Assembly: GCA_019828565.1 (NCBI GenBank)
Contig: JAHDYR010000012.1
Span: forward strand, 1,178,001 to 1,242,000
Origin: Carpediemonas membranifera BICM
Taxonomy: Eukaryota; Protista; Fornicata
Reading direction: 5' to 3'
DNA: 64,000 nucleotides
Positions within the stretch are counted from its first letter, which is position 1. Each line of letters starts with the position of its first letter. Positions 47,343-64,000 of the stretch are shown here, piece after piece. The translations under genes were made by a program, and so were the position numbers. Under the pieces are notes generated by a model. The model worked only from the letters and a program-made list of their open reading frames with translations, ran no database searches and was not told the DNA's origin.

Positions 47343-49230
47343 CTACAACCCGAAAACCCGTCTGAGCGTGGGCTCGTCCAGGATCAGCTTGCTGACCCCG
47401 GGATCCAAGTTCTCAACGCCACGCAGCCGGTCACAGGCGGCCAGACAACGCATCATAAAGCTTGACTCAACCTGACTCTGCAGCGAAAGCCGCAGTTTAG
47501 AGTCCTGGACGCGAGAGAGGACGGGGTAGTTGAAGCCGGTGGTCAGGACCGCGCGGACAGCCTGCAGTGCGTCTGCGGCCACCACGTTGAGCCCTGTGAA
47601 CGTACCAGTGTTCATGGCGTTCTCCAGCTCCACGAGATTCGTAGCAGCAAGCATGGCCGCGAGCTCGTCCCCCACGACGATATCTGCGAACGTGGCCCGT
47701 TGCTCCTCGAGCAGGGCGACGACGTGGTCGAGCGGGGCGTAGTGGAGGTCGACCCCCCGCACCCCCTGCCCCACCACGGCCTCCATGGCGGCGATGGCGT
47801 TGAGCATGAGCAGGGCTGAGACGGTGGGGTCCCTCCCGCTGCTGTGGAGCGACGCGTGGCGGAGCAGGGCGTTGCTGTACTGCGAGAGGGCCAGACCCAC
47901 GCCGCGGGCATCGTCCGCCTCGTGTAGCCCGGGCCCCAGTGTGTTTTTGACGGTTTCAAACATGGCGGGGAGCAGTTTTAGGCCCGAGTCGAATCGGACC
48001 GAGGGCTGATGAAGACGGTGGGTCAGCTTGGACTGCTTCTCGGGCAGCGGGAGCTTCACCTTGACGAGTGCATCGAACTTCTCGATGCATGTCGAAGATA
48101 TCGCGGCGCACATCTGGGTCAATGCCTTTGAATCCCGGGCTAGGATCCTACCGAGACAGCCCACGCCGGACACCTGCTGTATCGCCGCAGCATTGGCCTC
48201 AGCAACGTTCAGCGGCAGGGCCTCCGCCAGTGCAATGCATTCGAACACTGCGAGGATGCTTTCCGTCCTCTCAAGCAGCTCGATGCAGCGGGGTTGGATG
48301 TGGGCCGTCAGGGCATGGCGGGGTATTTCCTCGAGGCACTCCATGGTGGTCTCGAACATCTGGTCCACCTCGGTCTCGGTGACGTCGGGCGGCAGCATCG
48401 TCGTCGTGACGAACTTCGCCTCAGACACCAAGGAGGCGTGCAGCCAGGTAAAGACGGCCACGATGGTCGCTAGATGGCCCTCCTGTATGTCATTGGCGCA
48501 GGCCATGGAGAACGCTGTCTCCCGCGACCGGGCGATAGAGCTGGAGGCCAGACGACATGTGACCGGAGCCGACGCCACCAGGAGCGTCATCACACGGGCG
48601 ATGAGCGGCGACACGGCCGTATCCTGCTTCGTGGCGATGCTAACAGCCGTTGACACCTCGCGCTGGACTGCCTCGAACAGTCGCTGGCGGTGTAGGTCGC
48701 ACGACCGCGCCACATGCTCACCGGCCTCACAGTAGTCGGTTGCCGTCAGCATCTCCGTGGAGACCTGCTTGATCTCGTCCAGCCGCCTTATCAGGGGTAT
48801 GACGGCCTCTGTGAGCCGGCCTGACACAATCACTGCACTCTCCTCATCCGTCAGACTCAACTTCGTAATATAGTCTGAGAGAAGCTGCCTGTGCTCCTTC
48901 AATGCCGTCTGCTCGTCGACTAGGGCGCGGTATGACATGACCGTGGGCCTGAGCGTCGTCTTGAGAGCAGCGGCTGAGGCATTGACGCGACTGAGGTTCG
49001 CCTTGAGCTGAGTGAGCTCAGCGCGAAGAGAACGGCACTTATTCTCAATGGTATGGATGGAATCGCCGAGACTGCCGAGGATTCCCTCCTCCATCGCCAC
49101 AACTGGCCCAAAGTCCTCCTTAGAGGCGCTCTTGTCCTTCACTGCTTCGGGGTTCTCGCGAAGATATTCCGCTATCCTGTATAAGCAAGTGTATATGTCC
49201 ATACAGTGAGGAGACAGCGTAGTCGGTCAT
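47343..49230 (-). CDS. COG6: Conserved oligomeric Golgi complex subunit 6-like; intron 49177-49204
   Basis: LLSDYITKLSLTDEE and FTWLHASLVSEAKF resemble COG6 motifs; N-terminal coiled coil. Confidence 0.65.
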
Positions 49231-49395
49231 CGGATCGTTCTTGACATAAGCTGCGCCATCATGAAACGGACCCGAGTCAAGACTGGTGGCTGCCTGGCTG
49301 CTATCAGTGTGCTACGGCAGTCTCGAGTCTGTCTCCGCCGAGTCTGATGGGGCCGCAGTCAGTCCAGTCCTGCGACGATATTGAGAGCACAGCCG

Positions 49396-50706
49396 ATGGC
49401 GGATGAGGAGTATGCGCCACGAGTGATTGGCGATGAAGAAAGTGGCGATGTTGGTGATTATATGGAGAATCCCGCCACTGCACGCCTCGCACGCCAGCTG
49501 GACAAAGACCTCGGGCTCAATCTCGGCTTTGTCCCCGAGGAGGAGTCCGATGACGACGATGATATGTTCATTAGCGCCGAATCCGAGCAGAGTGATGACG
49601 ACGATGACGTTGCCGATGCAGACTACGTAGAGGAAACTGCTCCTGAGCCTGCGGACGACAACGAGCCCGAGGACGAGGGGCTGGAGCCCGAGGAGCTAGA
49701 GGAGGTCGAGGAGATCGAGGAAGCCGCGCAGGAGCAGTCGGATGCCTCCGCCGACGCTGCCGATGTCTCTGATGAGCCCCGCCCCCGGACCCGCAAGGCC
49801 CGCGCCCCCCGCACGGGTAGGAAGAGGAGGGCCCGGGCTCCGAGACTCGAGGCACCCACTGAGCATGTGCGGCCTGTGCTGAGCAACGTGGTGTCGTATC
49901 ACGATTTCGGGGCGCCGATCGACCTCAAGGCGCTGCACATGACCCTCAAGTGCGCGGAGTACCACCCATCTAGGTTCGCAGCGGCAATTATCCGCATCCC
50001 GAACACCAAGCAGACGGCCGCACTGTTCAGCAACGGCAAGGCGACCATCACAGGATCCACCTGCGTCGCCGAGGCCCAGCTGGCCGTGCGGCGTCTCTTC
50101 ATCCTACTGAACCAGATTGCGAAAGTCCCGGACGTCAAGCTGCAGCGAACGTCGTTCCGCGTGTCCAACATAGTGTCCCGTGCTAGTGTGCCGTACGGCA
50201 TCCACCTTGAGACCCTGGTGCAGGAGCTCGCGGCAGTGCTTAGACCCCCGGACAATGCGGAACCGAGGGAGAAGACCGAGGCCGAGGCGCTGCGGGAGAA
50301 CTTCATTCGGGCCGGGGTCGAGTCGGCCTTGTATGAGCCCGAGCTGTTCCCCGCGGTCACGATCCGGCTCAAGGACCCCGGGATGTCAGTGGGCGTATTT
50401 GTGTCTGGGTCTATCTCCATCACCGGCGCCAAGGGCGTCGACGCCATGGAGACCGGTTTTGACTACCTCGTGAAGCTGGTCGAGCCCCATATGATCCCTT
50501 TCGACAAGCCCAAGCCGACAGAGAGCACCGCCGGTGATGCCGTGGAGAATTCAGGCGAGGCTGAGTCAGAGACGCCTGCTGAGCAAGCGGAGCAGACCCC
50601 CGTGGAGCACCCGGCCGATGACCCGGCTGATCAGGGCGGGGCGTCGATGGCGCTGGACGACGGCGTGGAGTCGAGCGAGGAGGAGGAGTGGGCGACCTTT
50701 GGATAA
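49396..50706 (+). CDS. TBP: TATA-binding protein family with acidic N- and C-terminal extensions
   Basis: LSNVVS...AEYHPSRFAAAIIRI...LFSNGK.TITG; NIVS...YEPELFPA...VFVSG.ISITGAK. Confidence 0.88.
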   Translation: MADEEYAPRVIGDEESGDVGDYMENPATARLARQLDKDLGLNLGFVPEEESDDDDDMFISAESEQSDDDDDVADADYVEETAPEPADDNEPEDEGLEPEELEEVEEIEEAAQEQSDASADAADVSDEPRPRTRKARAPRTGRKRRARAPRLEAPTEHVRPVLSNVVSYHDFGAPIDLKALHMTLKCAEYHPSRFAAAIIRIPNTKQTAALFSNGKATITGSTCVAEAQLAVRRLFILLNQIAKVPDVKLQRTSFRVSNIVSRASVPYGIHLETLVQELAAVLRPPDNAEPREKTEAEALRENFIRAGVESALYEPELFPAVTIRLKDPGMSVGVFVSGSISITGAKGVDAMETGFDYLVKLVEPHMIPFDKPKPTESTAGDAVENSGEAESETPAEQAEQTPVEHPADDPADQGGASMALDDGVESSEEEEWATFG

Positions 50707-50757
50707 GGGGGGCCTCTTTAAATTCGCGGTTTATGCCAGACTGAAGAGGGCGCTGAG

Positions 50758-52344
50758 ATGCTCGAGGAGGAGCTCGAGAAGTATATCGGCCCACTATCAG
50801 CAGCTGTTGTATCAAATAAGCCAGAATCTGAGGAGCTAGCAGACGCTATGGCAGTAGATCTCTGCAGGCTTCTCATGCATCAAAATACCGCCCCAACAAC
50901 GCCGCCTCACGCCATTGAGAACGATGTGCATGAATCATGCGATATAGAGGGCCCTAATTCAGAGGAGCCAGGTGACTACTTGCCCTACCAGGACGACGAC
51001 CTGCTCCTGCTGCTGTCCTGCCTCGAGACGCCCACCACACCGCTATGGCAGGCGATCATCCTGTGGTGTATTGCTCTCAGACTGCCGGGCATGGCGGATG
51101 ACGCGCCAGTAGAGCCCCCGGTGGCCAACTCCCAGCATCTCTTCCCCATATGGATCGCCGCCTGGCGCAGCAGCGACCTCAGAGTTGTCACAGTCGCCTC
51201 TGCAACAGCCCCGATGCTGTTCCCGTATCTTGGCCATGTGGTAGCCCCCGATAAGCTGCTGGAGATGGTGGCCGAGCTCTACGCCGACCTCGCCGCCCCC
51301 GAGGCCACGCTCCTTGCCCGCCTGCCCGCCATAGCCGCCGTGCCGACGCTGCTGCACTCCACCCCGGTCCCTGTTGGCCTGACCGTGTCCTGCTGGCGGG
51401 CGGTGCTGTGCGCCATGCTGAGGCTGCCCCGCGACGACCTCAGACAGTCCCTCCGCACCGTCCTGGCCACAGTGGCGGCTTGGCCCATCACCCTGCTGCC
51501 CGACATGACCCCCAGCCCGCTGAGCATGATGCTGATCCTGCTGCTGGGCTCCGTGGCCAGGCACCTGACCCACTCAACCCGAGTCACTGACAAGATCAAA
51601 GTGTGGCTCATCGACCCGCAGACACCAGTGGCCATGGGATACACGCCGGACCTCAACCAGTCCGTCCTGGCGCCGCTGCTGGTCTCCCTCGTAGTCTCCG
51701 GCGCCGTTGTCCATGACGACATGGCCTCCCTCGTCCTGTACTACGCAGGCCTGTTCGAAGACCGGCCTAAGTACCGCGCCCAGCTCAACCAGGCCATGGT
51801 GCGCCATGCCCGCGTCGCCATTGCCCGGGACCCCGAGGCCGCGGCCCGACTGGCCCCCGTGGTCTCCGCGCTGCCCCTGGAGTGGGGCGACGTGCTCGAC
51901 CTCGCCTTCTTCGCATTCCACGGCTGTCCGGCCGTACGTGACGCCATGCTCCGCCCCATCGCTGCACAGTCAGCTCGACTTGGCGCGAGTCAAGTCAAAT
52001 CGCTGGTCAAGTCCAGTGTCAGGTCGAAACCACCTAGATTCAAACCAGATTTCCCTGAGATCACGACGCGATTGACACTGTCGGCGTGGCGACGCCATGT
52101 GACCGCCTTTCTCCACTGCGCCAACGACAGCGTCGCCTGCAACGGCATGCTACCCGATACCCCCAGCCCAGCCCAGCCATTCCTGCCTGTCATGTGCGTC
52201 CTGGCTGGCGGATTCTCGCCGTTCATCGCGGATCTGCTCCGCGCCAGGATCGCAGAGGCGGTGACACTGTGTCGGGGCGATCTGGTCCATGGTCTTGACC
52301 ATTGGGTGCGGGTGTGGCTGCCCGGGCTGGACTGGGACGACTGA
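50758..52344 (+). CDS. Hypothetical helical protein
   Basis: 528-aa ORF with GC3-rich codons; aataaac/gtaaat downstream. Confidence 0.7.
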   Translation: MLEEELEKYIGPLSAAVVSNKPESEELADAMAVDLCRLLMHQNTAPTTPPHAIENDVHESCDIEGPNSEEPGDYLPYQDDDLLLLLSCLETPTTPLWQAIILWCIALRLPGMADDAPVEPPVANSQHLFPIWIAAWRSSDLRVVTVASATAPMLFPYLGHVVAPDKLLEMVAELYADLAAPEATLLARLPAIAAVPTLLHSTPVPVGLTVSCWRAVLCAMLRLPRDDLRQSLRTVLATVAAWPITLLPDMTPSPLSMMLILLLGSVARHLTHSTRVTDKIKVWLIDPQTPVAMGYTPDLNQSVLAPLLVSLVVSGAVVHDDMASLVLYYAGLFEDRPKYRAQLNQAMVRHARVAIARDPEAAARLAPVVSALPLEWGDVLDLAFFAFHGCPAVRDAMLRPIAAQSARLGASQVKSLVKSSVRSKPPRFKPDFPEITTRLTLSAWRRHVTAFLHCANDSVACNGMLPDTPSPAQPFLPVMCVLAGGFSPFIADLLRARIAEAVTLCRGDLVHGLDHWVRVWLPGLDWDD

Positions 52345-52790
52345 CCGTGTTGTTATCATAGTTACTGGCCAATAAACTGTTAGATCGTAAATGCGATTCT
52401 CTTTCTTGAGCAGACGCCTCGGCACGGGGGTCCTGGCATCGTGGCTGAACAGAAGAGGGTCCATGTAGTACAGCGCGTGGACGGCCGAGTCGAATGAGCC
52501 CCTGTTGTCGCGGTAGCATTGTCCAGGCTGAAGCGGGAGTGGAGGTCGAACTGCGCGGCATCCAAAGGGTGCGGGAGGCTGGCAACGAGGGCATCCTTGA
52601 GGATCTTACCCAGCTGGCCGACCCACCTGCACTCGAGGTCGCCTTTGTCGCAGAGCCTCATCACACGCTTCACTGCGATGTCATGGTCGGCGTCGAGCCC
52701 GCTGACGTACCGGAGCACGAATTCAACCTCCCCACCCACGTATCGCCGGTCGTTTGCATAATTTATGTTGGGGGGCCGTCGATATTTACA

Positions 52791-53723
52791 CTAGCGCCAG
52801 CCCGAGGCGTGGCCGGCGAGCTCACAAGGTTTCATGTCCAACGAGTGCAGAGCTGAGAGCAAATTCTCCTGCCGCCGCTGCGTCTTCTTATAGTTGCTGG
52901 ACCCAGGTTTCTGGCGCTTGAGCGTGGCTTCGAACCGCTGGAGCTGTTGGTTCAGATAGCGGTACTTGGCGGTGACGTCCCTACATGACTCTACGAGGTC
53001 CTGCTTGTACTGTACCCGCACGGCGTCCTGCACTCGTCGCTCGTGCCGTTCGCTCTTGAACCTGAAGCCGGGCTTGACGTAGTAAGGGACGGTCTGCACA
53101 GACCCGGGGAGCTGCACCGCAACATACCGCACCTCACTCATACCAACGGTGGGCTTGAGGCTGAAGGACTGGCTCTCGTCCGGGTGGGCCAGCAGCATGC
53201 TGAGGAAAAGGACTAAAACTATCGACCCCATAAGTAAAATAGGCCGCCAGCTGAACCCAGCGTCCATCACGGCAGACCCGCGGGCTGCTCGAGGCCGCCC
53301 GCCGGCAGGGGCACGGCGAGCATAGTTGTAGGTGGGGGTGGATGTGAACTGGGCCCCTGGGCCGAAAAACATGTCGAAAGGAGACATCCCGGGGCCAAAA
53401 CTGAAGGATGCAGGACCTCCCTGCGTGTATGAGCGGAATACGAAGTTGGAAAAGTCCATATTCGTGGGCTGCCCCTGATTCATCGGCACCTGCCGACGCG
53501 TCGTCCCGTAGCGGTCGTACATGACCTTCTTCTCGCTATCAGAGAGTACCTGGTAGGCTTCAGACATCTCCTTGAACTTAGCTAAGGCCACAGGGTCGTT
53601 GCCAGCCTTATCAGGGTGGTACTTGGCTGCGAGCTTCCTGTACGCCTTCTTGATCTCTGTGTCCGTGGCGTCCTTTCCTATGCCCAGGATTTCGTAGTAG
53701 GAGCGATCTTCGTGTAGCGGCAT
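52791..53723 (-). CDS. DnaJ protein, DNAJB12/14/C18-like (J domain, TM, DUF1977-like)
   Basis: YYEILG...YHPDK J domain, TM helix, PYYVKPGF...ESC...PCEL. Confidence 0.88.
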
Positions 53724-53852
53724 GAAGAGAACTCCAAGTCGCGGCGCAGCCAACCAGTTGCTCATGTGCACTTTATGTCGAATATCGTGTAGCGCGGAAG
53801 CTAGAGCTAATCCTGCGCAGCACACTACCTCCACTCACCCACTTCAGCCCTC

Positions 53853-54039
53853 GTCTGTGCCATCGGTCTGTCGTGCTTTCAGTCGTCATTCTGCACGAAA
53901 AGATGCGTCGTCTGTCGTCCATCGTCTGTGTCGAATGCTGCTGTCTTCTTTCGCGTCTGTGCTCGTCTGTTACGCGCTCATCTGCCGTCCATTGCCGGTG
54001 TCTGAAGCTCATGTCGTCGTCTTCGTCATCTTAGTCTGT
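53853..54039 (+). repeat. Cluster of same-strand GTCTG(T) direct repeats upstream of the Fanzor-like gene
   Basis: GTCTG at 53853, 53866, 53910, 53924, 53955, 53965, 54000 and 54034. Confidence 0.6.
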
Positions 54040-54188
54040 TGTGAGAGACACTAGTGGTGGAAAGCGGTTGTAGCTAGTAGTAAAGACGCTTTGTGCTGTA
54101 TGATGCTGGTTTCTTGTGTTTTGAGGGATGCTGCTAGCTGATGAACCCTGAAAAGAAATGATCGATGCAGGCAGCTCAATAGACTCCG

Positions 54189-55795
54189 ATGCCTTCCAAG
54201 ATATTCACCGTGAAGGCTTCCGTTAACAAGGCTATTGGCGAGATTAACGGTGGAGGCGATAACAACGCGCCGCGGCGAGGAAATCTTGAACCCGGCATGC
54301 GTTCTTTCACGCAGGCTAAGTACACATTCACTTGCCTGCTTGCGTGCGTCTCTGCATCTGCGCACGCGTTGACCCCACCGAGGACGGTCAACCTGTTCGA
54401 CGAGGAGGTCCTCAAGCAGATCGTCATTGCTCAGCAAAAGGTGTCGAAGGCAAAGGCAGCGGATCGGTGCAGGTGGATTGGCGACCTGGCGATGTGGAGG
54501 GACCCTGACATAACCCCACTCGTCCGGGACTTCAGGGAAGCCTACGTTGGAATTGCAGCGCCATTTCAGAGCTGGTTGGGCGAGTACTCCACAGCCACCC
54601 GGGTCTGGCTCTCGCGCGCGTCACCCGGGTACCTGACCCGTCTTCGTGCTGGATTAGAACGGGTGCGTCCGCTCCTCCATGATCGGCCGGGTGTTCGACA
54701 GGATTTTCTCGACACCCAAGGCGAGCTCGACACTGAGGTTGCCGCCATAGCCGCCGATCATGGCATGCATCATCGTCAAATGCATGCATCGCCCGAGGGG
54801 CAACGGGTGGGTCGCACTGGTACCGTGGCCGAGGCCCTCGTCGGCGTGCTGTCGTGCGTCACGCGCATGAGTGCTGCAGTGACCAAGCTGGTCACACTCA
54901 CTCGTGCCGTGAACCTCGAGCTCAGTCAGGCCCTGCCAGAGCCGAAGCTCGTTCCGTTCGTGCCGATGGCACCGGTCAGGCCTGGGTTCATGGCCATCGA
55001 GCGCGGAGTAACAGCGCTCACCCCAGCGATGAAGCGGCGCCTGCGTGTGCACGTGAATTGGTCAGCAACCAAGAATTTGACCGACGAGCAGGTTGATAGA
55101 CTCGAGCGTGATCACGGCGACATCACCAAGCTCCGCAGAGTGCTCTCAGTGAGGACTGACGGGATCTCTGTTGCTGTGACGGTTTGGGTGGGTCGCGAGA
55201 AATACCGTGGCGGTCGGGTGGCTGACCGGCCCAGATCATCAACGAGGGGACGAGAAAGTGTTTCCGCCGTGCGACTTTTGCCAATCACTGTCTGCGCCTG
55301 AAGCACTTCGCCCGGGCTGGACGTCAACTCCTGGATGATCTCGGCGGGCGCCCCCCGGAGCCCATTCACCTCGAAGTCGCGTACGGGGCTGCACTGTTCG
55401 GTTCCGCCGGCACTCCCTCCTGTGCTCCGTACCGCCACTTTGCTCGAGCTCTCCCTGGCATCATGCTCCGGCACAACGTCGTCGTGAGTGTCACGATGGT
55501 CTCGGAATTCCGCACTTCCATCGTGTGCCCATACTGCAAAGCACACTTCCGACGTGTGGTGCACACACACCGCACCATGCTCTGCCAGAATCCCGCGTGC
55601 GAGGGAGCTCCATGGCGCGTTGAACGGCTACGTCGGCATCCCGAGCAGAGAGACATACTTCTCAATCTCTCTCACCGAGATAAGAGCGCCAGCGAGAACA
55701 TCCTTTGGTGCACCTACGATGCAACTTCAGATCAGATAGAGCAATCTCCTTTCCACTACGACTCCCAGAGAGGTGCTCTTCCTCGCTATCATTAA
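54189..55795 (+). mobile_element. Fanzor1/TnpB-family RNA-guided endonuclease gene, split into two frames and apparently lacking RuvC-I
   Basis: First frame: IFTVKASVNKAI ... SVRTDGISVAV. Second frame (open 55226-55795): FRRATFANH..., VAYGAALF...AP, VSEFRTS, CPYC, CQNPAC, HRDKSASENIL. Confidence 0.8.
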
Positions 55796-56115
55796 CTTGC
55801 CAAGTTGAGCAAGCACGCGCTGCAGCGTGCGTGATATGCTGCGCACGATTGATAGAGTATGATGAACCACACTGCGATCCTGATGCTGCTTGGATCACTG
55901 TGTGTTTTGGACTCAAGTATTCTAATCCTGCGCAGCATATCGATGTGCTATTAAGCGCACGCCAGACACACCCTAAGGGACAGTTATCGAATGTACCAGG
56001 ACCGCTGACACCATCTCACTGGAATCCTTGGTGATCAGTGTCAAGATGCTGTTCGACTGGATCATTCCCTTCTAGTCGGGCCTGACAATGCAGGAGGCGC
56101 TACCTGAGCCTGCAG
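55793..56115 (+). ncRNA. Candidate omegaRNA (fRNA) scaffold downstream of the Fanzor-like ORF
   Basis: Perfect 13-bp stem (55833-55845 with 55929-55941) enclosing nested stems, plus several more hairpins, starting right at the stop codon. Confidence 0.55.
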
Positions 56116-56333
56116 TGGTTGGTTCTTTGAGTGTATACAGTGTCTGATCAATCTGCCGAGGCTCTGCTGACTGATGACCGTGTGCGGGTCAGCTCCCGAA
56201 ATAAATGGGCCTCTTAGACCCTCAATAAACGTGGAAGAAACATCATACCGGGCTCGCAGTGTGTCTCTTGTCTTGTCCATTCGGCCCTGACCAAGGCCAA
56301 CCTGACATCATCACCAAGCCTGCTTTACCAATG

Positions 56334-57704
56334 CTACCCGCGCCCCGCCCCGTCGCCGTCCTCGCTGTCCGTGGCCAGGTCGAGCTCGAGAAGGGCCCCA
56401 TCTCCTGTGTCGGGCCGGACGAGCCTCAGGCGGTACTCGCCCGCAGGCCCGGGCTCAGCGGGTTGGGCCGCCTGCCGGGGGATGGTGGCTCTCAGCCTCG
56501 CGCCCAGCACGAGCAGGGCCTCTTGTAGGCTGTCGCTGCGAAACGCCAGCGCGGTGTTCTCCTTGAAGAGCGCCGTCCACGGCACGAGCGGCCTCTCATC
56601 CGGCTTGGCCGGGGGCGTCTTAGCGAGCTGGACGTCGAGGGGCGCGCTGTCCGGCACGAAGACGCAGGAAAGCGCAATGTCATCGTCGTGGAAGCGCTTC
56701 CCGGCCCCGCTCCCCGGCCTCTTCCGCTTGGCCGCCTCGCCTCGGACCCGTTCGCGCTTCTCGTCCAGCCCGGCCTGGATCCCCTGGGCCGCCTGCCACA
56801 GCAACCGGTTCTCCTGCGCCAGCGTCCGAACGAACTCCCTGTGGAAGACCTGTCGCTCGCCCGCGGTCATCGCCACGTCATTCTCGGGCCGCATCCTCTC
56901 GCCGATACCGCGCTCGTCCGGGTCGACCGGGGCCAGCGGCTCCCCGCGGAGGACGGCGTCGAACGCCTCCACCTGGCCCTGCAGCCGCTGGTTCCTGATG
57001 TGCCGCGTGTAGTTAGTCTCCCGCAGCTCGGCCGTCTCGCCCGTGACCGGCACGACCCGGAAGGCCGGCGCTGCGTTGACGGGTGCGTCGGCCCGCTGGG
57101 GCGCGGGCTCCAAGACCTCGTTGACCGGGGCGCCCAGGGCCTGCCTGACGCGGGCCTCGGCGCGTGCGATGCACCCCTCGAGACGGCGGGTCTCAACTTG
57201 GACGACGCTGATCTCCGCGGCGAGGATCCGCTGCTTCGCATTCTTCCTGGCGTTCTGCATCCTGGTCATCTGCGACCTCGAGTGCGCCTCTACGGGCACC
57301 ACGGGGATGGCTGCGAACTCCAGTCGCGTCGGCAGGGTCCTTTCGAAGGCCGTGGGCGCCACGGGGTCTTGCAGCAGACCGAACTCGGCGAGGAGCGCCT
57401 GGACCTCCAGGAAGCCCTGCAGCCGGCCCTGCAGCCGCGCGCACTCCTTCACGGCGGTGAGCTTCCTCGCGATGAGGATCTTGACGCCGGGGAAGCCTCC
57501 TGGGGGCGGTCGCGCGTGGTCTGTATCGTCTTGCTCGGTGCTGTTGCCCTCGCTCGAGCTTGCGCTCTCTTCGCGCTCCGTCCTGTCGCTGTCTGCGGAA
57601 TCCGCCGCGCTGCTGTTCTCCGAGTCCTCGCGCTGTGCGGCGTCGGATACGATTGCTTCGTTGCCGTTGTTCACGGCGCTCAAAACGCGAAACATGGGGT
57701 GCAT
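56334..57704 (-). CDS. Hypothetical protein with two weak internal repeats (RLQG..xF)
   Basis: 456-aa ORF; ggtaaag after the stop; convergent with the Fanzor-like gene. Confidence 0.7.
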   Translation of the reverse strand: MHPMFRVLSAVNNGNEAIVSDAAQREDSENSSAADSADSDRTEREESASSSEGNSTEQDDTDHARPPPGGFPGVKILIARKLTAVKECARLQGRLQGFLEVQALLAEFGLLQDPVAPTAFERTLPTRLEFAAIPVVPVEAHSRSQMTRMQNARKNAKQRILAAEISVVQVETRRLEGCIARAEARVRQALGAPVNEVLEPAPQRADAPVNAAPAFRVVPVTGETAELRETNYTRHIRNQRLQGQVEAFDAVLRGEPLAPVDPDERGIGERMRPENDVAMTAGERQVFHREFVRTLAQENRLLWQAAQGIQAGLDEKRERVRGEAAKRKRPGSGAGKRFHDDDIALSCVFVPDSAPLDVQLAKTPPAKPDERPLVPWTALFKENTALAFRSDSLQEALLVLGARLRATIPRQAAQPAEPGPAGEYRLRLVRPDTGDGALLELDLATDSEDGDGAGRG

Positions 57705-57870
57705 TCAACCGGTCAAGACCGTGCACTGGTTCTGAATCTCGGGCGTCACGTTATAGGCGCGGATTAGTCGTCACATTCTTCGCGATGCTCTGCAAGAATT
57801 TAAGGTCCCTCCCCCACCGTAAATCCTGCCCCAACCCCGCCACCTGTGACAACCAGTTTACCAACACAAT

Positions 57871-59475
57871 TTACCCGAGGCCCATGCCCTTGGCCATCTT
57901 CATCATGGCGCCCATGTCCATGCCCCCCATGCCGGGCATCCCACCCATGCCCCCCATCTGGGACATCATCCGCTCCATGTTGGCCATACCCGCAGGCCCA
58001 CCCATCTGCCGCATCATCTGCTGCATCTGCGCGCCCATCGCGCCGCCCCCCCGGCCGAGGCCGCCCATCATGGAGCTCATCATCTTCTCCATGTCGCGGG
58101 GGTTCATGTTGCCGAGCTTGCCGGGGTTGAGGCCGCCCTTGCCCAGCCCCTTGCCCATCATCGAGAACAGGTTCGCCATCTTCTTCAGCTGGGCGAAGAG
58201 CAGCTTGATCTCCTCAAGGGGTACGCCGCTTCCCATCGCGATGCGGCGCAGGCGGGACTCGTCGTTGATCTTGGCCGAGTCCAGCTCGCCGGGAGTCATC
58301 GAGTCGAACACGTACTGAACCTTGCGGAGCCGCCCCATGCCGTCCTGCCCGTCGAGGTCGAGCTGGCCGAGTCCCCCCATCCCCGGGAGGTGCTTGAGGA
58401 AATCGGTAATGCTGCCGCCGTCGAGCATGGAATCCATCATTCGGAGCTGCTCCTGGATATCCCTGAATGACGTCTCGCCCTTGAGCATGTGCGTCACCAC
58501 CTCGACAGACTTCTCGGAGTCGAGACCGGCGTTCTTCATCTTGTTAATAAGCCCGCCGATGTCGCCCATGCCGAGCATGCGGGAGACGAAGCTCTCGGGG
58601 TTGAACTCCTGCATGTCGTTCATCGTCTCACCGACACCGATGAAGGCGATGGGCGCCCCAGTGGACACAACGGACGTGAGCGCACCGCCGCCCTTCGTGT
58701 CGTCCGAGTCGAGCTTCGTGATCACGTGCGACCCGACGCCGACGATGGAGTGGAACTGCTCGGACTGGAGCGCGATGATCTTACCGCTGTTTGTACCGTC
58801 CATAATAAACATGATATGGTCGGGGTTGGCCGCTTCCTTCACCGCTGCCATCTCAGCCATGAGCGCCTCATCCTGCTGGGTGCGGCCGGACGTATCGACG
58901 ATGACCACCTCGTACCCGGCCTCCCGGAACCGGGCTACACCCTCCCGGGCAACCTGGGCAGGGTCATCGACGTCACTGGTGAAGCATGGCGCGGGTACTG
59001 TACTCGCGAGCTGGGCAAGCTGGTCCCTGGCGCCAGCACGGAATGTGTCAGCGCCGATGAGGGCGACGCGGAAGCCCTTCTTCTTGTAGTGGCGGGCAAT
59101 CTTACCGCACGTGGTGGTCTTACCAGAACCCTGCAGACCAACCATCATGATGACGTTGAACTTGTTGCGCTTCGGCTTAAATGTGGGGACCTTCTCGCCG
59201 TCGACAGTGGGAGTCATCATCGCGACGAGCTCCTCAAACACCGCCTGCTGGATCATTACGCGGACGTCAACAGAGGGGGCAATTTCTTTGAGGTTCACAC
59301 GTTTCCTAACGCGGTCACGGAACTTGTTGACAACGGCAATTGGGACATCGGCGATGATGAGAGCCTTCGAAAGGTCCTTGATCACTTCATCCAGAACTTC
59401 AGCTGTCACTGAGTTTGAATCTACAATCTTCTTCAAAGCAGCACCAACCTGCTGGCCAAGAGCTGCTAAAACCAT
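57871..59475 (-). CDS. SRP54: Signal recognition particle 54 kDa subunit
   Basis: GLQGSGKTTT, DTFRAGA, DTSGR, TKLD, Met-rich M domain (RRIAMGSG). Confidence 0.97.
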   Translation of the reverse strand: MVLAALGQQVGAALKKIVDSNSVTAEVLDEVIKDLSKALIIADVPIAVVNKFRDRVRKRVNLKEIAPSVDVRVMIQQAVFEELVAMMTPTVDGEKVPTFKPKRNKFNVIMMVGLQGSGKTTTCGKIARHYKKKGFRVALIGADTFRAGARDQLAQLASTVPAPCFTSDVDDPAQVAREGVARFREAGYEVVIVDTSGRTQQDEALMAEMAAVKEAANPDHIMFIMDGTNSGKIIALQSEQFHSIVGVGSHVITKLDSDDTKGGGALTSVVSTGAPIAFIGVGETMNDMQEFNPESFVSRMLGMGDIGGLINKMKNAGLDSEKSVEVVTHMLKGETSFRDIQEQLRMMDSMLDGGSITDFLKHLPGMGGLGQLDLDGQDGMGRLRKVQYVFDSMTPGELDSAKINDESRLRRIAMGSGVPLEEIKLLFAQLKKMANLFSMMGKGLGKGGLNPGKLGNMNPRDMEKMMSSMMGGLGRGGGAMGAQMQQMMRQMGGPAGMANMERMMSQMGGMGGMPGMGGMDMGAMMKMAKGMGLG

Positions 59476-59671
59476 GGTGAATGCCCTGTCTTGTGATTTC
59501 AGTGCCTAAAATGCACAGGATAAACACAGACGTATGATTGGAGTGAAGGCATGGCTGACTCCAATAGTACTTCTTAGAGTCCAAACATCCTAGTATCGCC
59601 CCAAAAGAGACGTGTGCATTTTAGCCACCATCATGATAGACGAGCCAGGACAAAAGGCCGCCAAACAGAAT

Positions 59672-61529
59672 ATGCCCAAGAACTACTTCGCCCGTCAAGT
59701 GCAGACGGTGCCCATTGAACTATTCAATGCTAAACGGAGCGATAAGTCCAACCAATCCATCCCTACCATCAATGCGTGGAAAATTCACCCCGTGACTGCC
59801 AAGCGGACACTGAAACCGACGTGGGACTCCAGCTTGACACGTTCAGTGCTTTCGTTGCGTGGCACGACATACATCCAGCTCCCAGACAAGGATCCCGATC
59901 GCCGTTTGTCAATCCCCACAAACTAACCCAGTTGGTCTCACCCAGGGCTTCCTATGCCTCCAGATGTTCTCCCCGGTCGGCACTAAGTTCAGCCTGCAGC
60001 TAAATATCACCGACAACACGAACACTCCACGCCGGCTCCACCTGTCAACCGCGATCCAGCACATCCCGTCAGACATCTCGCTCAACGGCCAGGCACCCCT
60101 CAACATAGGGCAGGGTGCATGGCTCAACTTCGTAGTGGATATCCCATCATTCTGCCAGGGTGTGTTCCGAACGGGGTTCAGCTCCCTTGACCGCATCCAG
60201 GTCCACGCCAACTGCGACCTGGCTAGGGCCCTCACACTCCCGAGGCCCCCGGTCCACAACCTCCCTGTGGATGCCTACTCCTCGGCCGTGGCGTATGAGA
60301 TGGCCGACGAGACGGCGATCCCGCGGACGATGCAGCTTCCCCCGTCAGTCGGCAGGTTCACTCAGATATACACCTTCGATGATGCGGCCGGCCTGGTATC
60401 CGCCCTGGAGGACCAACGGCATGGCGCGGAGATGCCTCCGCCCCGCCCCGAGCCCCGTCGCCGCGGCTACGACGCCCTACCTGAAGTCCCCTCGGAGTCC
60501 CCATCTCCCGAGACGTCGCGGATCTCAGCATCCCCTTCGCCGTCCCCCGTGGTGCCGAGGACGACCCAGCAGGGGACGCGCCCCCATCCCCACAGCGCGG
60601 GGTCTGGCCCACCCCGGTCACAGATCCCGCGGCCCTCAGCCATCCCACGGCCACGGTCGACTCGGCCCATGGGCGGGACTAAGCCCGCTCTGTCCAGGGA
60701 ACTGATGCAGCCCAAGCCCAAGCCGCGGCCGGCGCCAGGGATCGCGGCGCGGTCGGCCAAGCCCCCGTCGCAGAGCCCCGGCAGGGCGGTTGATCCGGTG
60801 GGGCTCGGGTGGGAGTCGACTCCGCAGCCTAGGGTCAGCCGGCCCGTCAGTGGGCGGCCTCGTGCCACGGCGGAGGAGACTGAGGTCAGTATGGTCGACA
60901 TCAGCGCGGAAAACGGGATGATTGAGCGCGACCTCACGTACGGTGATGACCGCGATGACACGTTTGAGAGCCATATCGAGATGGATGAGGCAGATGACGA
61001 ACCCGAGCCCCGTGGAACCCGGGACGAGCTCCTTGAGTCGTCGGGCCTCGACCTCGACGAGCAGCGGCTGATCGTTGCTCAGCTGGAGCGGGAACTCGCA
61101 GCCTTCGCGACACCCGACTCCCGCGGGACCGAGCAGGCAACGAGGCCGGCAGACCCGGACGGGTTTGACGACAGTCTGGGCATTGAAAGGGACAGCGGCC
61201 TTGTCGACGACGATGATACTGGCCTGGCGGATGACCTTTCCGGCATCGCGCTGGAAGAGGTCGATGACGTGGTCGACCCAAGGGCCAAGCCGACCGCCCA
61301 AGTCTCACTGGGGTTCGATAGCGACCCTGCCGACCTGCCCGCCCCCATCCGGTCTGACAGCCCCGCCCGGGATCACGACGACGAGGAAGAGGATGCACCG
61401 CTGCAGTCACGGCTGGCGGGGTTGCCTGCGAGGTCTGAGATGGTGAGTCGGGACGACGACCTGGTGTACCTCTCGGACCAGGAGGCGTGGTACAACCCGG
61501 AGACGGGCGAGTTCTTCGATGCCCGGTGA
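59672..61529 (+). CDS. CFAP20DC: CFAP20-domain-containing protein (C3orf67-like); intron 59904-59931
   Basis: IQLPDKDPDR|LGLTQGFLCLQ...ITD...RRLHLST...WLNFVVDI...SLDRIQVHANC; C-terminal LVY...WYNPETGEFF. Confidence 0.82.
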
Positions 61530-61919
61530 ACTTGTTATATGCACTAAATTATCGGCACAACTGGCGAGATCCGACATTACGAATAAATGGAGTAGCGACG
61601 ATACATGTGCTCAACGGAGACCCAACAACCGCTGTCAATACCATATTCCATGCGCAGCGCGCGCGAGAGCTGCCATCCAGGCAATCATGGGCCCCATTCG
61701 CAATTCTTGAACACTGCCCGATGACTGCCCTGCGCAGCTTACTCTCAGCCTGCACAACACGCAACACAAGCTGAAGCGGAACTTCCTCCGACGGCCCACA
61801 GCCCGGTGCGCCACAGCCACTCGATGTAAAGAGAATATCTGTCAGCCAAGAGCGGACCAAATTCCCAGAGCTGTGTGTGGGCTGGTCCAGGGCGTCGAGC
61901 AGACCCAATTGAGCGCCAA

Positions 61920-62095
61920 TGTTAACTATGATGCAGGATTCGATTCGATATGATCAGATCCGCGTAAGACTCATGAAGAAATCTCGGGCAGTTTCCGTCG
62001 TCCTTACGCGAACTTTCTCGAAAGTTGTTTTAACACGCTATACAAAGCCTTATTCAGCAATGTTTGACTTCACTGGACAGGTTGTTGCTGTAATA
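61920..62095 (-). repeat. Possible 3' LTR of the retrotransposon (boundaries uncertain; could extend to 61533)
   Basis: AT-richer non-coding segment after pol, minus strand TATTAC...TTAACA. The partner LTR lies outside the window. Confidence 0.3.
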
Positions 62096-62172
62096 CGGCC
62101 TCTGTTGTTGGGAACGTTTATCCTTAAAATCTCCACTAAACTCTTGCGAGTCAAACCTGACAAAACCCTCAG

Positions 62173-64000
62173 CTACATCCCGCTCTCCATGGCATGACTC
62201 GCTAAGTAGTCATCGAGCGCCTTGAGCTTCGCAACAACCACATAGGGCTGCCAGTCCTCGCTGCCATCGGCCCATTCGACTAGGAACTCCTGCTCACCAT
62301 TGTCTGTCACGTGCGTGTCCTTAATGCGCGACACCAGGATCTCCATCATGTCTCGTCCGTTCATCGTCATCAGTTTCTCGCGCGTCCAACCGGTAGCGTC
62401 AAATTTGCGCACACGGTCGAAGTGGACGCGCGTCGTTATGTCCTCATCCGGTCTACGTGCCGTGACTCCATAGTCATGCACCTGTACGACCTCATACGGT
62501 CCTTCCCATGTTGGCAGCAGCTTAGCTGCCCGTACACCTGGCAAGACCAGCACCCAGTCCCCGATCTCGACGCGTGGGCTGGTCCTGTCCGCCTGGCGTG
62601 CGCCCCTTCTCCTCAGGGTCTCGCGTTGCACCAGAACCGCGTCGTCGCGTGCTCGTCTCAAGTACTCCTCCTGCTCATCGCCTAGGTCCTGATCCTGGAC
62701 CTCGATCGCCGTGGTCGGCTCTCGGCGTGGGAGTCCCGCGTGTGGCTCCGGCCCCATCAGGCCGTACACCAGCCGTGCCGCCGTCGTCCCCGTCGCCTCG
62801 GAGTACTCCGTGTTGAGCTGCCGCTGAACGAGGGGGATGAACTTGTCCCACTGCTCAGCCTCGCCCCACTCCAGGACCATCGCCCGAAGTCTCTGCAGTA
62901 TCCGTCTGTTCGCTCGCTCGCACCCACCGTTCGACGGTGGATGGTAGGGGAACGTCTTCGACTGTCCCGTCCCGAACCTCGCGACCAGAGCTGCGATCGT
63001 CTCGTTGATGAACTCACGCCCGTTGTCAGAGTGCAGGGTCGTCATCGGCCCATGGTTTCCGATCCAGCGCGTTATGGCGTCGGCCGCGGACGCGGCTGAC
63101 TTGTCCACCGAGGGGTAGATCTCGACGTATCTCGTGAATACGTCAATTACCGTGACTACATACTGAGCGCCGCTTTCGGCCTCTGGGGTGATCTTCAGCG
63201 TATCGATCGCGACTTTCTGGAACGGAGTCTCCACCATGTGAGTCCCCATCCTCAGTTGCAGTTGATCCACCGATGCGAGCTTCTGGCATGAGCAGTGGTC
63301 CACGAACGACTTCACGTCCTCCCACATGCCGCGCCACACGTAGCCCTTCTCCTTCAGCGCCCTATACGTGCTGTACCGTCCCAGATGCTGTGCCATGCCC
63401 TTGTGCGCCCTGGTCACCGCCTCGCTCTTGCGCTCCTCGGTCATCTCGCCTGTAGCGAGCTGCCTCTCCCGGTCTCGCGCCTCCGCGGCGTCCTGCGTGA
63501 AGTCGGCCCTCTCCTCGGGGTCGTCGGCCTCGTCCGGGTCATCGTCCTCTTCCTCCGCGCTGGTGTCCTCCTCGCTATCCGCAATCTGCACGAAGTCGTC
63601 GTCTCCAAGCCTGTTGGGTCTGCGCGTGTGCCTCCTCGGCCTCGTCGCTGCCGCCTTCGCCTCTGGGAGGTTCCTTGACAGCGTGTCTGCGACCACGTTC
63701 GACTGACCCGGGAGGTGAATCACGTGGAAGTCGAACTCCTGCAATGCCAGTCTCCAGCGCAGCACTTTGGCCGACGCTGTCTTCTGCTCCATGTACGTGA
63801 GATTCTTATGGTCCGTCTCGATGGTGAACGTGTATCCCTGCAGATACATACGCCACTTCCGGATACACTCGACGATGGCGAATGCCTCCTTCTCACCGGT
63901 GGTCCACCTCTTCTCCGCCCCGTGGAACGCACGACTGTACACCGCGACGACGGCCTCTTGACCGTCCTGAGTCCGGTTGCATAGCATACCCCCGAGCCCG
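62173..64000 (-). mobile_element. Ty3/Gypsy chromovirus pol 3' part (RNase H, integrase, chromodomain), truncated by the window edge
   Basis: EKEAFAIV and IETDHKNL (RNase H); H...H...CSC zinc finger; AIDT, SDNGREF, GGCER DDE core; WEGPY; EFLVEWADGSEDWQP chromodomain. Confidence 0.95.

Follow-up and report, generated by a model that had tools for sequence, protein, structure and literature searches.

A broken Fanzor1-like nuclease gene of Carpediemonas membranifera lies in a mobile element that inserts beside an abundant host motif

The window, i.e. the whole stretch of 64,000 nucleotides of Carpediemonas membranifera DNA that we have analysed, contains a gene that comparison with its paralogues identifies as a dead, frameshifted deletion derivative of a Fanzor1-like nuclease gene, Fanzors being RNA-guided DNA nucleases related to CRISPR-Cas12. 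The gene is surrounded by a mobile element of 2150 bp (53788-55937), which had been missed in the first reading of the sequence and whose insertion duplicates 5 bp and usually takes place some 10 bp away from a host motif that abounds in the genome. Movement of the element as DNA, by a transposase of the integrase type, appears to fit the sequences best, with a probability that we would put at roughly 0.55. The window copy itself is an ordinary dead member of its family; the family represents an additional Fanzor lineage, from a metamonad, that is very divergent and has been amplified recently, and its carrier is unlike any listed Fanzor host in its integrase-type ends, its direct repeats and the length of a target motif that is set back from a variable target-site duplication (TSD).

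The window gene and its intact paralogue

The earlier note had described two ORFs, at 54189-55301 and 55463-55795, with the frame of the second being free of stop codons back to 55226, and a series of motifs, i.e. a TDG strand near 55155, a Glu codon at 55505, CPYC, CQNPAC and an Asp codon at 55679; all of these are found where it had placed them. The motifs are not there by chance, since both gene pieces recur in more than 100 near-identical copies and three subfamilies have kept the motifs: each piece, searched separately, has more than 100 genomic matches that are about 80-99% identical, further subfamilies appear in the genome search at 40-55% identity, and the three subfamilies, about 50% identical at the protein level, share the motifs. 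The N-terminal part of the gene up to the deletion (54189-55233, plus strand), 90-96% identical to its best paralogues, comprises a helical REC-like region and the WED-like TDG strand; the C-terminal part (55234-55795, plus strand) comprises a bridge-helix-like segment, the alternative Glu of RuvC-II (55505), the zinc finger, the Asp of RuvC-III (55679) and the stop codon.

What does not hold is the proposal that the two frames form a single gene of about 520-535 aa, joined across one missing base near 55230 or across a 47-nt intron (55188-55234). The distance between the two gene pieces is about 290 bp greater in the paralogues, which show that 289 bp are absent from the window at 55233: among the 44 loci that span the break, the extra bases number exactly 289 in 31 and 231-293 in 12, the number being zero only in the window. 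With 289 extra bases at the break, a single missing base is rejected; the putative intron is in-frame coding sequence in the intact paralogue, and no such joint is seen in the run contigs examined. The deleted stretch encodes the DPG motif of RuvC-I, and thus neither proposed join restores the first catalytic Asp. The breakpoint (55232-55233, plus strand) bears a 2-nt CA microhomology, and the deletion has shifted the frame and removed about 96 residues together with RuvC-I; it is private to the window locus, being one of more than 20 different internal deletions in the family. All of these observations speak against a window copy that functions, split or spliced, as a Fanzor of about 520-535 aa, perhaps as an RNA-guided regulator without catalysis, a reading that we hold to be very improbable even though the 47-nt GT...AG stretch would rejoin the frames and both pieces are stop-free. 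The contigs of all four runs have loose ends at 55232 that carry the undeleted sequence, and, since the window's own deletion junction is not seen in any contig of these runs, the window-specific deletion may be an assembly error.

For the protein, we have used no artificial joined sequence but the natural intact paralogue at locus L039 (contig C18); its unbroken frame of 642 aa, or 634 aa from the second Met, is the only intact ORF among the copies read. Fanzors are marked by a DPG at RuvC-I and by a Glu located six residues before the zinc finger and 120-160 aa after the DPG, and they have been searched for with the pattern CxxC-x(12-18)-CxxC, followed 4-8 residues later by the RuvC-III Asp (PMC10711439). 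In the intact 634-aa protein, the Asp of the DPG is D384, invariant in the three subfamilies, and the alternative RuvC-II Glu is E539, located six residues before the first zinc-finger Cys and 152 aa after the DPG; the first Cys pair and the 15-residue spacer fit the Fanzor pattern, the second pair is Cx4C, and the RuvC-III Asp is located 26 residues past the zinc finger, in an RD motif that is invariant across the subfamilies. The D-E-D catalytic triad is kept in all three subfamilies and pN/pS among the copies is 0.58, which together argue that the family is under some selection.

The assignment to the Fanzor/TnpB family, already made in the earlier note, is supported by the DPG and alternative-Glu fingerprint of the intact paralogue and by the Atlas comparison, where the feature score is 0.98 and the TM is 0.59-0.64 to giant-virus Cas12f1-like/DUF8286 clusters (model pLDDT 0.60), with the cluster neighbours being giant-virus proteins that carry PF07282/PF26935. 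Sequence searches of single copies against Pfam, NCBIfam and the PDB have given no significant match, with PF07282 matching weakly over the zinc finger (E 0.1-0.14 in the Pfam search), and our own AlphaFold model of the protein is of low confidence (pLDDT 36). A profile of the three subfamilies matches Cas12f and Parasitella Fanzor1 weakly, with the expected motifs aligned; in the weak profile match to PDB 9cf0 (E 0.6), the TDG strand and the EFRTS-zinc finger stretch are aligned.

Judged by these motifs, the gene family is Fanzor, and it is probably Fanzor1: the protein has 634 aa, the element has no TnpA, and the best match to a solved Fanzor is to a Fanzor1, there being no outside homologues for a tree. 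With Parasitella parasitica Fanzor1 (PDB 9cf0) and the giant-virus Fanzor-like clusters, it shares the DPG at RuvC-I, the Glu six residues before the zinc finger and a length of about 630 aa, and with Fanzor1 it also shares a structured (here predicted) RNA that ends at the right end of the element and a non-autonomous carrier with a TSD; it differs from Fanzor1 in about 20 extra residues between the zinc finger and the RuvC-III Asp, and in a carrier that has direct repeats instead of terminal inverted repeats (TIRs) and targets a host motif. Both defining RuvC features are present, and the element would work like other non-autonomous Fanzor1 elements.

Homologues by sequence have not been found outside the C. 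membranifera genome, viral and metagenome contigs included, and the near-identical database proteins are all from C. membranifera; we have found no paper on a Fanzor in Carpediemonas, and no family member in the searched supplements of two Fanzor surveys. In public databases, the Fanzor fragments (P0001, P0028, P0031) are misnamed as cytosine deaminase, RRXRR-domain protein and Smc. Low-depth contigs of the element also occur in runs X5 and X6, which are labelled as two other organisms, either by contamination or from a relative.

The element, its target and the predicted omegaRNA

Homology among the copies spans about 53807 to 55937, and the ends of the element are two degenerate 41-bp direct repeats that start with TGTG and end with CACA, with the TIRs being only these 4 bp (TGTG/CACA); the core of the repeat occurs 232 times in the genome. 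In the window, the left repeat (53788-53824, plus strand) is damaged, consisting of a head that starts with TG, 12 foreign bases that replace positions 8-23 and the inner 18 bp, against 41 bp in the family form, while the right repeat (55899-55937, plus strand) ends on an inner CA, two bases short. The three end-shifted copies (window, L003 and L034) all still end on CA or start on TG; integrases require TG/CA termini. The 5-bp TSD is exact in 16 of the 25 automatically scored elements and has one mismatch in 3, and it is exact on inspection in four more (window, L034, L048 and L062/L064). In the window it reads TATCG, at 53783-53787 and again at 55938-55942, both on the plus strand, and the predicted guide would lie in the flank beyond the right copy, at a position that follows the known Fanzors (PMC10711439).

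In 28 of 29 copies the left repeat is not identical to the right one, and the differences at positions 5-7 and 11 are fixed; the sole identical pair is a tandem junction, and the polymorphic repeat haplotypes further in are discordant within copies. A purine-rich tract abuts the left repeat on the minus strand (53825-53844), with 16, 18 and 18 purines out of 20 in subfamilies 1, 2 and 3, respectively, against a background in which 3.3% of the 20-mers of the window reach 15 and 0.26% reach 17; it may be a relic that resembles a polypurine tract (PPT) or the pyrimidine-rich leader of the Fanzor mRNA, and in one subfamily it shares 11 nt with the PPT of the gypsy element of the window. In subfamilies 1 and 3, neither repeat is followed by a primer-binding site of the TGG type. 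Subfamilies 2 and 3 are laid out in the same way, each with direct repeats of its own, and the derivatives of the elements include, besides the internal deletions, tandem copies, subfamily chimeras and mini elements (43 and 78 bp) that are each flanked by a separate 5-bp TSD.

Several local arrangements are worth recording on their own. At 55944-55970 of the window, immediately beyond the right TSD, 27 bp start like a subfamily-3 left repeat and finish with CACA, but no separate TSD flanks them; they are a remnant or a product of chance. At L008, L015, L058 and L073, subfamily 3 is represented, by a 43-bp mini element or by a full copy, within, or a few bases from, the ends of a subfamily-1 element, which indicates that insertions pile up at the same sites. 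The genes of L005 and L050 are chimeric between subfamily-1 and subfamily-2 halves, though these are only about 50% identical as proteins, and at G000 C8:147000-158000 and C8:931000-935600, element derivatives are arrayed in tandem, the periods being close to 1.7 kb and 2.1 kb. Replitron, Helitron and Crypton carriers, which we have considered because of the direct repeats, are ruled out by the variable 5-bp TSD.

To the left of the element lies a 12-bp motif with the consensus GTGCASTTTAWG (53766-53777, plus strand), a promoter-like site located 40 nt upstream of the start codon of a minus-strand DnaJ gene. The motif has 1215 exact sites in the genome, as opposed to 2 for the reversed control, and therefore belongs to the host. 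Of 26 termini, 15 lie exactly 10 nt from the motif and 20 lie 9-11 nt from it, and the element is inserted in one orientation relative to the motif. A bipartite motif that would be part of the element has been rejected, because its second half is the end of the element and its first half is the host motif. A promoter role for the motif is likely, and this would make it a probable core-promoter motif of Carpediemonas; it is found near ORF starts in 22% of cases against 12% in the control (n=37), as a weak test of promoter function, and a contig from a run that is possibly RNA ends 8 nt from the window motif. A candidate reader of the motif is encoded nearby, at 49381-50706 (plus strand), i.e. 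a homologue of TBP that is extended at both termini by long acidic stretches.

Between the stop codon and the right end, at 55796-55937 (plus strand), we predict the scaffold of an omegaRNA, with two small hairpins and a third, long one, in the basal stem of which 55837-55845 is paired with the right repeat. The homologous stretch of L035 folds better than its shuffles (z = -2.7), and between subfamilies 1 and 3 a C-G pair of the basal stem has changed to U-A with the pairing kept; no compensatory pair occurs within subfamily 1 in the consensus fold. The right repeat is thus predicted to form the basal stem of a guide RNA that overlaps the right end of the element. Given the variable TSD and spacer, no target-adjacent motif (TAM) is evident, and the carrier strains the rule that the TAM matches the insertion site; it is also relevant to the question whether excising elements are the only ones that Fanzors serve. 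Since an intact gene, a predicted guide-RNA scaffold and more than 100 natural guides are available, the TAM and the cleavage become directly testable.

Retrotransposon pieces in the left repeat

A common sequence interrupts most of the left repeats; its outer (3') end is fixed, while its length takes at least 15 different values between 21 and 462 bp. The piece is flanked on either side by one and the same 6-mer, as a 6-bp duplication, and the junctions carry untemplated bases; uninterrupted left ends also exist, and the window copy is without the piece. The minus strand of the insert encodes the end of an ORF with a C-terminal PD-(D/E)xK-like motif, which we take, from the general features of R2 elements, to be an R2-type endonuclease motif, Pfam, the PDB and fold modelling having given no support for an endonuclease. 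Genome-wide, the relatives of the insert form a 5'-truncation staircase, distant relatives (38%) lie in open frames of 1391-1505 aa, and the 6-mer precedes 57 of 69 such 3' tails, though not that of the longest copy, at C1 near 1.44 Mb; no full-length copy that bears a reverse transcriptase (RT) has been seen.

The simplest reading is that the pieces are repeated site-specific insertions of an R2-like (RLE) retrotransposon into the end of the element, a reading in which the anatomy is observed and the mechanism is proposed, and a retrotransposon that targets the Fanzor element is thereby indicated. Such elements (PMC4640811) likewise have a C-terminal PD-(D/E)xK-like motif, a short repeat tail, 5' truncation, a short TSD and one fixed target inside a repeated element; the difference is that the target here is the terminal repeat of a Fanzor element. 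Where copies at unrelated sites have a left-end insert in common, their cassettes are mostly each other's closest in sequence, from which it follows that the composite moves as a whole and that the inserts are inherited; the pair L051/L040, which shares an insert without being close in the cassette, has two junctions that differ. Trans-splicing of the repeat onto the RNA of the LINE has been rejected, there being no constant acceptor at the junctions. Tx1L non-LTR retrotransposons are a further case of insertion into DNA transposons, i.e. Tx1D. Right repeats also contain foreign sequence, with other variable-length inserts and 11-12 bp duplications in L002 and L016, and with a coding-like insert of 267 bp and a short duplication in L045 (3440-3710).

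The route of movement

The reading that we favour is that the whole element moves as a DNA unit, by means of a putative DDE transposase of the retroviral-integrase type that would be supplied in trans and steered by the host motif itself or by a factor of the host that binds there, and that the element was possibly built on an LTR-derived scaffold. Pointing away from the neighbouring host gene, the element may borrow the promoter of that gene; intact copies would make the nuclease and, from the right end, an omegaRNA with a flank-derived guide, and, on the model of known Fanzors, the nuclease would cut empty donor alleles and restore the element there, a form of homing that we propose by analogy. 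The R2-like retrotransposon would insert site-specifically into the left repeat and then be carried along. We favour movement as DNA because the repeats differ in 28 of 29 pairs, the inserts are inherited and no typical primer-binding site has been seen. Among 80 loci, no autonomous partner or transposase has been found, and the PPT-like tracts of the three subfamilies speak against a DNA transposon in that they point to an LTR ancestry.

Relatives of such a carrier would be sought among Ginger2/TDD, IS3EU and IS481EU, which share its gypsy-like termini, together with a 5-bp TSD as in TDD-4 and TDD-5 (PMC2836005); the TIRs of Ginger elements are 40-270 bp (PMC2836005), while here they are 4 bp. 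IS481EU is present in parabasalids (PMC10045372). A 2026 review names only DNA transposons, and no retrotransposon, as carriers of Fanzors, and Ginger2/TDD, IS3EU and IS481EU are not listed among them (PMC13565253). We have assigned the carrier neither to TRIM nor to Ginger elements, since its repeats lack the identity expected of TRIM and its TIRs lack the length of those of Ginger.

The LTR-like features can also be explained by a carrier that is a miniature, TRIM-like LTR retroelement with the Fanzor antisense, copied via RNA by gypsy RT and integrase, possibly along a non-canonical route without strand transfer; we consider this unlikely. Repeats with fixed differences and inherited inserts in the left repeat reject a canonical LTR cycle, the product of which, regardless of the strand that serves as the RNA, is an element with two identical repeats. 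The looser form shares with TRIM and other non-autonomous Ty3/gypsy elements the TG...CA direct repeats, the 5-bp TSD, the PPT-like tract, which adjoins one repeat in three subfamilies, and solo repeats with TSD; the genome holds very many gypsy RT copies, with LTRs as short as 89 bp, and the family itself has more than 100 copies and many internal deletions. The fixed position beside a promoter-like site also has its like among Ty3/gypsy-type elements, and Ty3 and Tf1 target promoters. TSDs of 4-6 bp are typical for LTR elements (PMC12440569). Against it stand the same divergent repeat pairs, with haplotypes that are discordant within copies, the inheritance of the left-repeat inserts and the lack of a TGG-type primer-binding site in subfamilies 1 and 3; the repeats, moreover, are only 41 bp, the cargo is antisense, and the end of the gypsy element in the window does not lie 10 bp from a motif. 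A bolder statement, that a promoter-targeted Fanzor is spread by gypsy RT/integrase on a 41-bp mini-LTR, by a non-canonical route, and is preyed on by a dedicated R2-like retrotransposon, seems to us doubtful in the same degree; if true, this would be the first retroelement-borne Fanzor, and it would require a role of the nuclease other than the repair of excision sites.

A still less probable reading takes the unit to be a SINE/SIDE-like passenger of the R2-like retrotransposon, with the left end being the 3' end of the LINE, where target-primed reverse transcription (TPRT) would start, and with template jumps joining the Fanzor cassette to it. Most left ends do contain the LINE 3' end, with its 5'-truncation staircase, untemplated bases and stuttered tail repeats, and other variable-length inserts occur in right repeats; but copies without the LINE piece (L048 and the window) do not differ from the others in termini, TSD or motif, a duplicated 6-mer surrounds the piece, as in an insertion, shifted ends land on CA, and the 2.4-kb cassette nearly always has a precise far end.

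The host genes around the element (47343-61529) encode a COG6-like protein, the TBP, the DnaJ with a weak DUF1977, SRP54 and a CFA20-domain protein, and two ORFs near the element, at 50758-52344 and 56334-57704, have no family match. At the end of the window (62089-64000, minus strand) lies a Ty3/gypsy element with RNase H and integrase, whose ORF contains the PPT and overlaps at its end with an LTR of only 89 bp (62089-62177, TGT...ACA). A stretch of 155 bp to the left of it, at 61616-61771, recurs inverted, at 98% identity, beyond the other end of this gypsy element (G000 C1:1245928-1246082), as if the gypsy element were located inside an element with long inverted repeats.
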